64,000 nucleotides of DNA from Magallana gigas (lineage: Eukaryota). This document shows positions 35,829-43,798 of the stretch, one piece after another. The first letter of the stretch is position 1. Every line of letters starts with the position of its first letter. The notes beneath the pieces were generated by a model. It had not been told where the DNA came from. It did no database searches and saw nothing but the letters and a program-made list of their open reading frames with translations. Location: NCBI RefSeq assembly GCF_963853765.1, contig NC_088861.1, positions 10,044,001 to 10,108,000 on the forward strand. Reading direction: 5' to 3'. Made by a program: the position numbers and the translations under genes.

Positions 35829-36561
35829 TATCACCAGTGAAATGACATCCATTTCACTTTTGATAACTTTAGCATATATTTTCATAGTCTACTTTATTTT
35901 ACTTTATTCTTATCTTATATGTTCCCATACTTAGCAATTGCTTATTGACATCTAAAGCATTCCTTATTATTTATTTCTTAAGGTTGTCCAAGCTGTTGTT
36001 TACTTCTTAATCCCCTAGAATATTTAGTGATTTCACAGTAATTGTTAATCCTTATTGTCAGTGACACTGCTCATGACACTGGGCACTCATAGGTGTTAGT
36101 TAGGGTAAACAAAACCACTTTGACTTCTTCACATCAAAGGGATGACACTGATAACTTAATTATTTGATTAGCCCTAAGTGACAACTTTACCTTAGGCAAT
36201 TCATAGAGAAATTAATTCTTGTACATTAGTTCTTTTAGAAGAGAGTTAGCTTTGAGACTTCGAACTGAAAGGATGTAGGACGAAGCTAGGAAATCATGTA
36301 GAGTGTTAGGAGACAAATTTCTAATTCATCTGTTTAGGCCCCCTCCTCTAAATTACAGTTAGGAACAAGACTTGCTCATTAATGTTGTTACCTGCGTGTG
36401 TAGATTGGATTATTTAACATTCAATCTTTAATAAAACATTTCTCATATCCTGCCATTTGGACTTTGTGTATTCTTAATTTACTTATTCCCCTTGAGCTTA
36501 ATTCCCCAAATGAACGTGCACCATCGCCTAGTTATGTACCAGACATCCGGGCGTGGTCACA
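35829..36561 (+). repeat. 5' LTR (TA...CA termini)
   Basis: Starts TATCACCAGTG, ends GTGGTCACA; AATAAA at ~36429. Confidence 0.97.
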
Positions 36562-36564
36562 GAG

Positions 36565-36587
36565 TGGTCGAGAATCCGGTTCGAATC
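36565..36587 (+). promoter_or_regulatory. Candidate primer-binding site (atypical)
   Basis: TGGTCGAGAATCCGGTTCGAATC begins 3 nt after the LTR; its complement ends in CCA and contains a T-loop-like TTCGAACC; cognate tRNA not identified. Confidence 0.6.
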
Positions 36588-36850
36588 TTATGGAATTCCT
36601 CTCACTGAAGTAAACATTCCGGGACTTTTTGGATTTCTGCAGGATTTCTGTGCTGTCAAAAACTGTGATTTGTGACTCTAACATTCTTATGAAAAGGAAA
36701 GAAGACCAATCCATACAGAGACAGTGTGCCAGTTCCTGTTGGTGAGTACAGCCACTTTTATCACATGTGACACAGTTTAGATAACTTTCTATTGTTATTA
36801 TTTTTGACATTTATAGATTGATTATTGTTTAGCTGTTTTTATCACTGATA

Positions 36851-41572: not shown

Positions 41573-43050
41573 ATTTCTCAGCTTAATACAAATTAATTTT
41601 TCAAAAATCACTCTTAGACTATTACATTTTCCCAATTAGGTCAGCTGATATTTATTCTGTGTCCTGTACATAGTGCTAGGTAGTGTGACTGCAGCACATT
41701 ATCATCAAATTCAAAGGACCCAGGATAAATATACACAACTCAATTTTTTTTTTTTTTTCCCCAATATTTTAAAAATAATTCTCCCTTCTGTTTTTCTTTA
41801 AAGATTCTGAATTTTGTTTAATTTACTGAATAACATTAGAACGCCTGTAAGTTATGAACCAGCGGAAACTGTGGTAGTTTCTTAAACTGCTGGGGAACGG
41901 CGTAATGCTCTATCTCAGTATCAAGTAAACTTACTTTTTCCATCAGAATAATTTTTCTTTATACCTTAAAATCATAATTCATTTCTGCCAAAGTTTTGTA
42001 TCTCATATACTATTCTATTTATTTTTCTTTTCTATAAGTAATCTATGATAGGTAATTCCGTTGTGTCACATGTTGATTTCTTGTGGTTGTGCTTACTGAT
42101 TGATCATTTATCATGCCTTGTCCTATGCCCAAATTTGCAGATTCCAGGTCAACATAAACCGATGCCATCCTGTTTCCAATGCCATGAACACCTTTAATAT
42201 AAGCTATAATGGAACTCCTATAGCAAACATGAGATGTTATAGCTCTTTTGATATATATTTTTTTTTTGTCATGATGGAACTCCCTACTGGTGGGATGTCA
42301 TGACTTATTGTATATCATGATGGAACTCCCTCAGGGGATGTCATGATCAGGAACCAGGTTGCAATTTTCCCAGATACTGGTAGAAATTCTTTGTGGAGAC
42401 GTCCACTTGCTGCAGTTCCTGTCTGAGGACATCAAATCCAATGAACAGTACAAATTACAAAAGAAAACCAAATGAAAATCGACAAACCAATACAGAACCA
42501 ATACAAAGACTTTCGTGATTATATATGTGATACATGACCTTTCAATTCTTCTATTCATTCCATGGACTGATGTGACATTTATGATGCTGTTTTCAGAGAG
42601 ACATTATATTTTCATTATGAACAATGTAAAGTGAAATAGCATCTTTTAAATTGTATAGCTCTATTGTTTACTATTTTTCTTATGCATTGTACATGCAAGT
42701 CTTGATATTTTTTTTTTTTCTCTTTCTCCAATTTTTTTTTTATATAATGGGCCCTTGTATATACATGTATATAGTAGCTATAGTTTAGAATTCATTCAAT
42801 TAATAAGGAATCCACGCCCTTAGGAATTAATACTTTTAAAGTATATTTTTCCTGGTTTAGACATTTCTTAAATTTAGGATATTATTATCTATACTGACCC
42901 TATGCCTTAAGGTTAATGATATTTTCATAAAAATAATTGACCTGCTACATGTATCAGATAATATGTGTCATTAATTTTGCAATTTATGAAGAAAAAAAAA
43001 AGGCAGGATTGACTTATGGTATTCTGAGATTTCAGGAGAAATCTTTTTGT

Positions 43051-43065
43051 GAAGTAGGGGGAGCA
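43051..43065 (+). promoter_or_regulatory. Polypurine tract
   Basis: GAAGTAGGGGGAGCA immediately before the 3' LTR. Confidence 0.85.
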
Positions 43066-43798
43066 TATCACCAGTGAAATGACATCCATTTCACTTTTGA
43101 TAACTTTAGCATATATTTTCATAGTCTACTTTATTTTACTTTATTCTTATCTTATATGTTCCCATACTTAGCAATTGCTTATTGACATCTAAAGCATTCC
43201 TTATTATTTATTTCTTAAGGTTGTCCAAGCTGTTGTTTACTTCTTAATCCCCTAGAATATTTAGTGATTTCACAGTAATTGTTAATCCTTATTGTCAGTG
43301 ACACTGCTCATGACACTGGGCACTCATAGGTGTTAGTTAGGGTAAACAAAACCACTTTGACTTCTTCACATCAAAGGGATGACACTGATAACTTAATTAT
43401 TTGATTAGCCCTAAGTGACAACTTTACCTTAGGCAATTCATAGAGAAATTAATTCTTGTACATTAGTTCTTTTAGAAGAGAGTTAGCTTTGAGACTTCGA
43501 ACTGAAAGGATGTAGGACGAAGCTAGGAAATCATGTAGAGTGTTAGGAGACAAATTTCTAATTCATCTGTTTAGGCCCCCTCCTCTAAATTACAGTTAGG
43601 AACAAGACTTGCTCATTAATGTTGTTACCTGCGTGTGTAGATTGGATTATTTAACATTCAATCTTTAATAAAACATTTCTCATATCCTGCCATTTGGACT
43701 TTGTGTATTCTTAATTTACTTATTCCCCTTGAGCTTAATTCCCCAAATGAACGTGCACCATCGCCTAGTTATGTACCAGACATCCGGGCGTGGTCACA
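43066..43798 (+). repeat. 3' LTR
   Basis: Same length as, and apparently identical to, 35829-36561. Confidence 0.97.

Follow-up and report, generated by a model that had tools for sequence, protein, structure and literature searches.

An LTR retrotransposon is expected to carry a gag gene encoding capsid and nucleocapsid, yet at one locus in the oyster Magallana gigas an apparently intact Ty3/gypsy element was proposed, from sequence alone, to have none. We therefore asked whether gag is truly missing, whether this is a peculiarity of one copy or a property of its lineage, and how such an element might replicate. The sequence analysed, hereafter the window, is a stretch of 64,000 nucleotides (GCF_963853765.1, NC_088861.1, positions 10,044,001 to 10,108,000, forward strand), and all coordinates refer to it. 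The element occupies positions 35829-43798 (7970 bp) and is organised as follows:

35825..35828, plus strand: left copy of the 4-bp target-site duplication (GTAA).
35829..36561, plus strand: 5' LTR, 733 bp, termini TATCAC...GGTCACA.
36562..36850, plus strand: 289-nt leader without gag.
36565..36587, plus strand: primer-binding site (PBS)-like sequence, TGGTCGAGAATCC followed by a T-arm-like GGTTCGAATC.
36738..36776, plus strand: conserved leader box, comprising the splice-donor-like GTGAGTAC (36742-36749) and the palindrome TCACATGTGA and TGTGACAC.
36851..41572, plus strand: pol ORF, 1573 codons, with its own ATG (A at -3, G at +4).
36947..37240, plus strand: aspartic protease (aa 33-130, DTG at 48-50).
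37982..39043, plus strand: reverse transcriptase and RNase H (aa 378-731).
39509..40024, plus strand: integrase zinc finger and catalytic core (aa 887-1058).
40952..41551, plus strand: predicted C-terminal array of a chromodomain (aa 1368-1412) and two further three-strand-plus-helix modules (aa 1447-1501 and 1518-1567).
41573..43065, plus strand: 1.5-kb noncoding 3' region.
42060..42101, plus strand: 3' box complementary to the leader box.
43051..43065, plus strand: polypurine tract (PPT), GAAGTAGGGGGAGCA.
43066..43798, plus strand: 3' LTR.
43799..43802, plus strand: right copy of the target-site duplication (GTAA).

The two LTRs are identical over 733/733 positions, with identity running one extra base on each side by chance. 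As at this locus, related elements from other assemblies have 4-bp target-site duplications, and they share the terminal LTR motifs. The empty site before insertion would read ...TTAGTAGTAACATTTG... with a single GTAA. The PBS-like sequence lies 3 nt after the LTR, and the same TGGTxGAGAxxCC class is found at the same place in six related loci that lack gag (L001, L002, L003, L005, L006 and L007) and in two that carry it (L004 and L013). The PPT lies directly upstream of the 3' LTR, in a region conserved with L001. No tRNA genes were detected in the window and no Rfam families in the element.

A Pfam search of the pol ORF, which starts 289 nt after the 5' LTR, identified the domain order PR-RT-RH-IN: protease (RVP and gag-asp_proteas) at aa 33-130, RT (RVT_1, 1e-38) at 378-539, RNase H (RT_RNaseH, 3e-30) at 602-731, the integrase zinc finger and core (Integrase_H2C2, 8e-22; rve, 2e-15) at 887-1058, and an SH3-like stretch at 1185-1243. 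YIDD, DASD, HHCC and the D,D,E residues can be read directly in the translation. With a 1573-aa intact pol, the element does not fit the non-coding LARD/TRIM class.

We next determined whether a gag gene had been overlooked, using six independent tests. No gag family appeared in the Pfam search even at E<=1. The longest other ORF in the element is 136 aa; outside pol the longest are 92 aa (minus strand, leader and LTR end) and 75 aa (3' region), and none has a Pfam hit. No C-x2-C-x(3-5)-H-x(3-5)-C motif occurs in any of the six frames. A gag profile HMM built from the gag ORFs of 11 relatives, run at maximum sensitivity on all ORFs >=50 aa on both strands of window positions 30001-48000, gave no hit, while it detected gag in 49 of the 82 other loci searched, most of those with sequence upstream of pol. 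tblastn with the gag and env of a relative gave only noise. No gag or env remnant was found in the leader or 3' region by tblastn, the gag HMM or tblastx between relatives, and the env expected downstream of pol in an errantivirus-like element is absent. Finally, because gag might be hidden in the C-terminal extension of Pol, we folded aa 1351-1573 with AlphaFold (pLDDT 78). The model contains a chromodomain and two similar modules. Foldseek matched it to HP1/CBX chromodomains (prob 1.0, rmsd 1.3 A) and to the tandem chromodomains of cpSRP43 and CHD4, with no capsid-like match in the PDB. A Pfam Chromo hit was also seen in relatives, although below threshold (E about 2e-3). A sequence search of this extension against the PDB was empty, and an exhaustive search for its last 150 aa over 1.84 billion representatives found only 12 fragments of the same oyster family. 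The observation that this element is intact and lacks gag is thus confirmed.

To investigate whether the absence of gag is restricted to this copy, we compared the element with its relatives. The original prediction would have failed if siblings carried gag or if this were the only pol-only copy, and neither is the case. A sibling copy from another sequencing run (L010, 93% nucleotide identity) has the identical LTR-PBS-leader-pol junction with a collinear leader, and the same pol start occurs in 8 Logan protein variants, although the 5' junction of the oyster family was sampled over its full length in only two copies (the window element and L010). Eight further elements from other bivalve assemblies (L001, L002, L003, L005, L006 from Pinctada imbricata (GCA_033119305.1), L007, L091 and L092) have 39-57% Pol identity and also lack gag, the closest full-length relatives being only 54-57% identical. 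They have 112-740 nt between PBS or LTR and pol, and Pol has its own AUG in a conserved strong context in all members. In the six with both LTRs on the contig, the LTR pairs are 99.7-99.9% identical. These pairs, the identical LTRs and target-site duplication of the window element and the presence of multiple diverged copies are evidence of recent mobility. The families are abundant, with 90%-identity clusters of 42-104 pol sequences. Two other loci, L045 and L065, at first appeared to lack gag but are gag-pol fusions of more distant lineages.

In a maximum-likelihood tree of the RT-IN core, the nine gag-less elements plus one of unknown context (L011) formed one clade (UFBoot 96, SH-aLRT 95), nested among relatives whose upstream ORF is gag (Pfam PF03732, 10 of 10 tested). 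Amino acid identity between the gag-less families is 48-73% (55-58% for the window element against the others) and dS is saturated, which indicates that the loss is old. Pol nevertheless remained under purifying selection, with a dN/dS of 0.11 for L003 versus L005 and 0.16-0.52 within the oyster family.

We also looked for conserved features in the noncoding regions. The leader contains only short uORFs, and its overall fold is no more stable than shuffles (z +0.5). Apart from pol, only the PPT region and the leader box are conserved between the window element and L001/L002 (blastn and tblastx). The motif GTRWGTRC..TGTGAC[AC] of this box had 10 hits in 1.37 Mb, 7 of them in gag-less leaders. 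The box can pair with positions 42060-42101, with a predicted duplex dG of -47.9 kcal/mol against -23.1 +/- 2.3 for 100 shuffles (z -10.6), and the differences from perfect complementarity fall on G-U pairs. Equivalent pairs occur in L001, L006 and L007. Splice-donor masking, 5'-3' cyclisation or a packaging signal are candidate roles for these boxes.

The element is best explained as an intact, very recently integrated member of an old, monophyletic clade of chromodomain-bearing Ty3/gypsy retrotransposons of bivalves, which lost gag once, has no env and has since diversified while keeping a full Pol. The element cannot make a capsid, so the lineage must obtain one elsewhere or do without. In this view, Pol is translated from its own AUG, about 33 codons upstream of the protease, rather than as a Gag-Pol fusion. 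The RNA, and probably the element's own Pol, would most likely be packaged into particles made by Gag from gag-encoding relatives in the same genome, after which its own RT and IN would copy the RNA and integrate it through its own distinctive LTR ends. We hold this reading as a whole with a probability of roughly 0.6. The analysis itself establishes the anatomy, the absence of gag, the recurrence of the junction, the clade structure, the selection on pol and, from LTR identity, recent insertion. Transposition, the supply of Gag in trans, the identity of the donor, the route by which unfused Pol enters particles and the role of the leader and 3' boxes are inferences or hypotheses. Potential donors exist, as the gag-pol-env element L004 comes from the same assembly as the gag-less L003, and L013 shares the LTR-end motif as well as the PBS class. 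However, no donor was identified for the oyster family, and a gag profile search returned 23 hits, none named as oyster. In canonical LTR elements Pol enters particles as a Gag-Pol fusion, so an unfused Pol would need another, hypothetical route. Moreover, non-autonomous lineages are usually short-lived, and a clade this old that depends on foreign Gag is unusual, which leaves room for a capsid-independent or host-protein solution.

The original interpretation is therefore partly supported: the element is fresh and intact, pol is kept under selection, and the gag-less state belongs to the lineage. Borrowing Gag is the most economical inference, but the more specific proposal of a split genome, in which a gag-only element with related LTRs supplies Gag, remains a hypothesis that we consider unlikely on present evidence. 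The long persistence of the clade would be easier with a dedicated, co-evolving partner than with opportunistic parasitism, and the conserved boxes could be shared recognition signals. Still, nothing found here points to such a partner. No gag-only element turned up in the window or in about 20-kb flanks of six relatives, and exact-pattern scans for the PBS (IMG/VR) and the LTR-end/PBS junction (prokaryotic genomes) found nothing, although these collections do not hold oyster genomes and their silence does not refute the idea. It is also unlikely, but possible, that replication is capsid-independent or assisted by a host protein, with Pol binding its own RNA in cis, as foamy-virus or hepadnavirus polymerases do, and reverse transcription proceeding without retroelement Gag or inside a host-derived assembly. 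The separate AUG, the clade-specific gain of C-terminal modules, the strong predicted 5'-3' pairing in one subclade and the survival of the clade over very long divergence speak for this. Conversely, no LTR retrotransposon is known to replicate without Gag, the retained protease makes most sense in a particle-maturation setting, and the added modules look like chromodomains, which suggests integration targeting rather than RNA or capsid functions.

A cryptic gag, either very divergent, overprinted or assembled from small exons by splicing from the leader donor, seems very unlikely. Gag evolves fast, and the splice-donor-like site is followed by a polypyrimidine-AG stretch before the pol ATG. 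However, none of the small ORFs is conserved, and L003 has no plus-strand ORF >=70 aa other than pol. As for an N-terminal extension of Pol by splicing the leader uORF to the nearby AG sites, both candidate junctions run into stops (read by eye). The gag HMM finds even 30%-identity-level gags elsewhere, and the unannotated Pol segments are shared with gag-bearing relatives or are predicted to fold as chromodomains. A one-off deletion after insertion or a misassembly has no evidence in its favour and is refuted by the recurrence of the junction in L010 and across nine families in at least six assemblies; a post-insertion deletion would also not explain a clean PBS-leader-ATG arrangement conserved across a clade. 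The most far-reaching possibility, which is doubtful but not excluded, is that a whole clade has replicated for a very long time with no capsid gene, either through a dedicated gag-only partner or through a Pol-RNA complex, perhaps organised by the leader/3' pairing, that is packaged into unrelated capsids or replicates without any retroelement capsid.

Gag-less LTR retrotransposons are usually treated as short-lived, local derivatives of an autonomous master. Here, the gag-less state is the ancestral condition of a diversified and abundant clade, currently active as judged from LTR identity, that is spread over several bivalve genomes and whose Pol stayed under strong constraint. This makes it tractable to ask how a retroelement can keep its enzymes yet outsource its capsid: how unfused Pol reaches particles, how specific Gag-RNA recognition is between families, and whether parasitism of Gag can be evolutionarily stable. 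In practice, annotation pipelines that require gag to call an element intact or autonomous will misclassify an active family in oysters. The main survey of mollusc LTR elements (PMC6238403) is based on RT/RNase H and does not discuss the presence or absence of gag.

We finally compared the element with known systems. Foamy viruses and hepadnaviruses likewise make Pol as a separate protein, which must reach the particle by another route such as binding the genomic RNA, but they encode their own capsid protein, and the resemblance is an inference limited to Pol expression. The CYC5/CYC3 cyclisation sequences of Ty1 are also complementary segments of the 5' leader and 3' UTR of the genomic RNA, while the predicted pairing described here is much longer (about 35 bp in two helices), includes a splice-donor-like sequence and occurs in only part of the clade. 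Among bivalve elements, the errantivirus-like L004 shares the PBS class, the Pol architecture, the chromodomain after IN and the wider phylogenetic group. It differs in having a 316-aa gag (PF03732 plus two CCHC), in making pol by read-through of an in-frame stop and in its 810-aa Baculo_F env, whereas the window element has none of these and starts Pol at its own AUG.

The case is less unprecedented than was first implied. BARE-2 of barley (Tanskanen et al. 2007, 'Life without GAG') is the classic gag-defective LTR retrotransposon that keeps pol and is proposed to be packaged by the Gag of a partner. BARE-2 still carries a gag ORF that has lost its start codon and is a close derivative of its partner BARE-1, while here gag is entirely absent and the nearest gag-bearing relatives are only about 40-43% identical in Pol. 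The rice Ty1/copia element Tos17 (and RN304; Sabot 2014, PMC3977881) has intact LTRs, PBS, PPT and a long pol ORF without gag or a gag remnant, is demonstrably or evidently mobile, and is proposed to use Gag from a related autonomous element with a near-identical PBS. Tos17 is a plant copia element with only two copies and just one other gag-less relative reported, whereas the oyster element is a metazoan Ty3/gypsy element in a diversified, multi-species clade with abundant families, extra chromodomain-like modules and a conserved leader/3' box pair.

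We first determined what lies at these coordinates. A self-comparison of the region revealed a single pair of direct repeats of 733 bp without any difference between them, where identity runs one extra base on each side by chance. The tetranucleotide GTAA flanks both ends of the element. Three bases after the 5′ LTR lies TGGTCGAGAATCC followed by GGTTCGAATC, which is a PBS of the usual kind that continues into a T-arm-like sequence, while the purine run GAAGTAGGGGGAGCA abuts the 3′ LTR. Between the LTRs there is only one long ORF, in which Pfam placed the domains listed below.

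35829-36561: 5′ LTR, 733 bp
36851-41572: pol ORF, 1573 codons, with protease at aa 33-130, RT at aa 378-539, RNase H at aa 602-731, integrase zinc finger and core at aa 887-1058, and an SH3-like stretch at aa 1185-1243
43066-43798: 3′ LTR, 733 bp

No gag-related family appeared in this Pfam search even at E ≤ 1. The DTG, YIDD, DASD, HHCC and D,D,E residues can be read in the translation. The original prediction had described a gypsy element with identical LTRs, a perfect TSD and an intact pol but no gag, and this description is accurate. Elsewhere in the window, two LRR-plus-TIR ORF pairs (11869-13725 and 20749-22843) resemble Toll-like-receptor genes, which fits an expanded immune-gene region of a bivalve genome. 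A 200-aa ORF at 62685-63287 has a DZIP3/hRUL138-like HEPN domain (Pfam, 2e-24), and a run of 129 N at 60870-60998 represents an assembly gap or masked sequence.

To determine whether gag is really absent, we performed six tests, all of which agree that it is. No ORF other than pol exceeds 136 aa. Outside pol the longest ORFs are 92 aa (minus strand, over the LTR end and leader) and 75 aa (3′ region), and the small ORFs had no Pfam hit. No CCHC-type knuckle occurs in any of the six frames, and tblastn searches with the gag and env of L004, a gag-pol-env relative, gave only noise. We next built a profile HMM from the gag ORFs of 11 relatives and ran it without filters on every ORF of at least 50 aa on both strands of window 30001-48000, which gave no hit. 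The same HMM detected gag in 49 of the 82 other loci searched, most of those with sequence upstream of pol, including lineages that are only about 30% identical in Pol. The one part of Pol that gag-bearing relatives lack is the C-terminal extension. In a structure prediction (pLDDT 78), it folds as a chromodomain followed by two more three-strand-plus-helix modules, for which Foldseek found matches to HP1/CBX chromodomains and tandem chromodomains but to no capsid. Finally, outside pol, blastn and tblastx comparisons of the element to L001 and L002, two relatives with 55-58% identity, matched only the PPT region and a leader motif, so there is no conserved hidden coding. The predicted chromodomain and the two further chromo-like modules (window 40952-41551, Pol aa 1368-1567), with which Pol of the gag-less clade ends, are preceded by an acidic low-complexity linker and a conserved GKKRKRP..KHKFF basic patch, whereas gag-bearing relatives stop after one chromodomain.

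The absence of gag is not a private deletion. Short Logan contigs from other sequencing runs carry copies that are 97.9%, 96.5% and 93.3% identical to the window (L008, L009 and L010, respectively), all three with a broken pol. L010 spans the last 27 nt of the LTR, the PBS, the whole leader and the start of pol, and is collinear with the window apart from small indels. Eight protein variants in one 90% cluster all begin with the same Pol N-terminus. In addition, a 489-aa UniRef protein of Magallana gigas annotated as uncharacterized (A0A8W8MIN8) is a mosaic of three separate segments of this Pol (aa 103-318, 708-844 and 1431-1573) at 94-100% identity. It is either a gene model spliced across a copy or an internally deleted copy.

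We next investigated whether distant relatives have the same architecture. The best full-length protein matches are only 54-57% identical. None of the 120 best hits carries a gag Pfam domain, and in all of them the protease starts within about 60 residues of the N-terminus. We retrieved the DNA around eight of these, and found no gag ORF between the 5′ LTR or PBS and pol, or elsewhere in the element.

Table. Sequence between the 5′ LTR or PBS and pol in eight gag-less relatives (locus; source; interval).
L001; ERZ26168041; 333 nt from LTR
L007; ERZ26168041; about 240 nt from LTR (called ORF start at 112 nt)
L003; ERZ25069870; 226 nt from LTR
L005; ERZ25073814; 260 nt from LTR
L006; Pinctada imbricata GCA_033119305.1; 287 nt from LTR
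L002; Logan contig; about 290 nt from PBS
L091; Logan contig; about 265 nt from PBS
L092; Logan contig; about 740 nt from PBS

The six elements with both LTRs on the contig have LTR pairs that are 99.7-99.9% identical, and four of them have clean 4-bp TSDs, while L005 shows no matching TSD. LTR length varies two-fold within the clade, from 1.5 kb in L003 (6235-7774) and L005 (6208-7740) to 0.73-0.96 kb, as in the window (35829-36561), although LTR plus 3′ region stays near 2.2 kb. The 90% clusters of these relatives hold up to 104 Pol sequences. Despite near-identical LTRs, pol in both L001 (about 11398-11444) and L006 (about 12059-12260) is split into two ORFs by a frame change near the end of the integrase core, at different positions. 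L001 comes from a roughly 4x-coverage assembly, so sequencing error is possible.

More distant relatives (≤43% identity) behave differently. They have an ORF of 300-460 aa directly upstream of pol that is gag, with PF03732 in 10 of 10 tested and often a CCHC knuckle. In one of these, L004 (7017-14810 of ERZ25069870), gag contains PF03732 plus two CCHC knuckles, pol is reached through a single in-frame stop between gag and pol, and a chromodomain and an 810-aa Baculo_F-type env are present. The LTR-gag segment of L004 recurs 12.2 kb downstream, so two copies appear to lie in tandem sharing an LTR.

To determine how the gag-less elements are related, we performed a maximum-likelihood phylogenetic analysis of the RT-IN core of 27 elements (LG+C20+F+G4). 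All nine gag-less elements, plus L011, an element of unknown context, fell on one side of a branch with a UFBoot support of 96 and an SH-aLRT support of 95, and this clade is nested among gag-bearing elements. A quick tree agreed. The simplest reading is a single loss of gag, and this loss is old. Gag-less families differ by 27-52% of Pol residues (42-45% for the window against the others), and dS is saturated in five of six pairs. In the one measurable pair, L003 and L005, dN/dS is 0.11. Within the oyster family dN/dS is 0.16-0.52, as expected for a mix of active-lineage and post-insertion changes. In the eight members checked, the Pol AUG sits in a conserved A(-3) context, with G(+4) in seven of them.

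We next looked at conserved non-coding features. The PBS class (TGGTxGAGAxxCC) is shared within the clade and also with the gag-bearing L004 and L013, whereas the LTR termini (TATCAC...GTGAYA-like) are shared within the clade and with L013. The leaders of the window, L001, L002, L006, L007, L010 and L092 contain a splice-donor-like GTRWGTRC, followed 8-60 nt later by TGTGAC[AC]. This combined motif had only 10 matches in the 1.37 Mb of sequence examined, 7 of which are in these leaders. Between the motif and the Pol AUG lies a pyrimidine-rich stretch ending in AG. The leader of the window also contains three upstream AUGs with very short uORFs ahead of the Pol AUG (36589-36612, 36690-36746 and 36765-36770), the second of which ends in a TGA that overlaps the splice-donor-like GTGAGT. 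These uORFs could hold Pol translation low.

This leader box is strongly complementary to a segment of the 3′ noncoding region, and the pairing spans the whole pol ORF.

Table. Predicted pairing of the leader box with the 3′ noncoding region (element; leader segment; 3′ segment; duplex dG in kcal/mol; z against 100 shuffles).
window; 36738-36776; 42060-42101; -47.9 (shuffles -23.1 +/- 2.3); -10.6
L001; 7850-7894; 12886-12932; -42.2; -5.4
L006; 8874-8920; 13930-13980; -41.8; -5.7
L007; 7832-7887; 13400-13464; -57.4; -9.4
L002 (3′ region cut by the contig end); 166-200; 5399-5442; -28.3; -3.4

In each case, 0 of 100 shuffles reached the observed energy. The box sequences differ between elements, but each pairs with its own partner, and the partners co-vary between elements. 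In the window, the departures from perfect complementarity fall on G-U pairs, which points to an RNA-level constraint. L003, L005, L091 and the gag-bearing control L004 showed nothing beyond the null, so the pairing belongs to part of the clade and not to all of it. Candidate functions are cyclisation, masking of the splice donor and packaging.

The element cannot make a capsid, yet it has just transposed and its lineage has kept doing so. The best-supported explanation, to which we assign a probability of about 0.6, is that Gag comes in trans from gag-encoding retroelements in the same genome. In this view, the element would provide its own RNA, protease, RT/RNase H and integrase, with an enlarged chromodomain array that probably directs integration. 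Several steps of this explanation are inferences rather than results of our analysis. They include the identity of the donor, how an unfused Pol gets into particles, for which cis binding of Pol to its RNA is one possibility, and whether the pairing of leader and 3′ region serves packaging, cyclisation or control of the splice donor.

Among the alternatives, a dedicated gag-only partner, judged here without a DNA search of any oyster genome, and capsid-independent or host-assisted replication both seem unlikely, the latter marginally less so. A cryptic gag is very doubtful, and an artefact of this locus is the least likely of all. The original prediction had inferred that the lineage borrows Gag from a partner, possibly a gag-only element with related LTRs, and this interpretation is partly supported. 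Gag supplied in trans is the best-supported inference, while the gag-only partner is a hypothesis to which nothing found here points.

By its LTRs, TSD, PBS, PPT and Pol domain order, this is a Ty3/gypsy element with a predicted chromodomain. It lacks the gag expected of such an element, as does its whole clade, and in its inferred way of working it belongs with gag-less, pol-retaining non-autonomous elements. The main survey of mollusc LTR elements is based on RT/RNase H and does not discuss gag presence or absence (PMC6238403), although our literature searches were noisy and a description elsewhere, for example in repeat-library notes, cannot be excluded. The direct precedent is Tos17 in rice, which is active and pol-only, has no gag remnant, and is proposed to use the Gag of Lullaby, with which it shares the PBS (PMC3977881). 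BARE-2 is the other precedent. Relative to Tos17 and BARE-2, three things are new. The element occurs in animals and in the gypsy superfamily, and it is not a recent derivative of a master but belongs to an old, species-spanning and abundant clade. It also carries clade-specific additions, namely the extra chromo-like modules, its own Pol AUG, and the pair of boxes in the leader and 3′ region.
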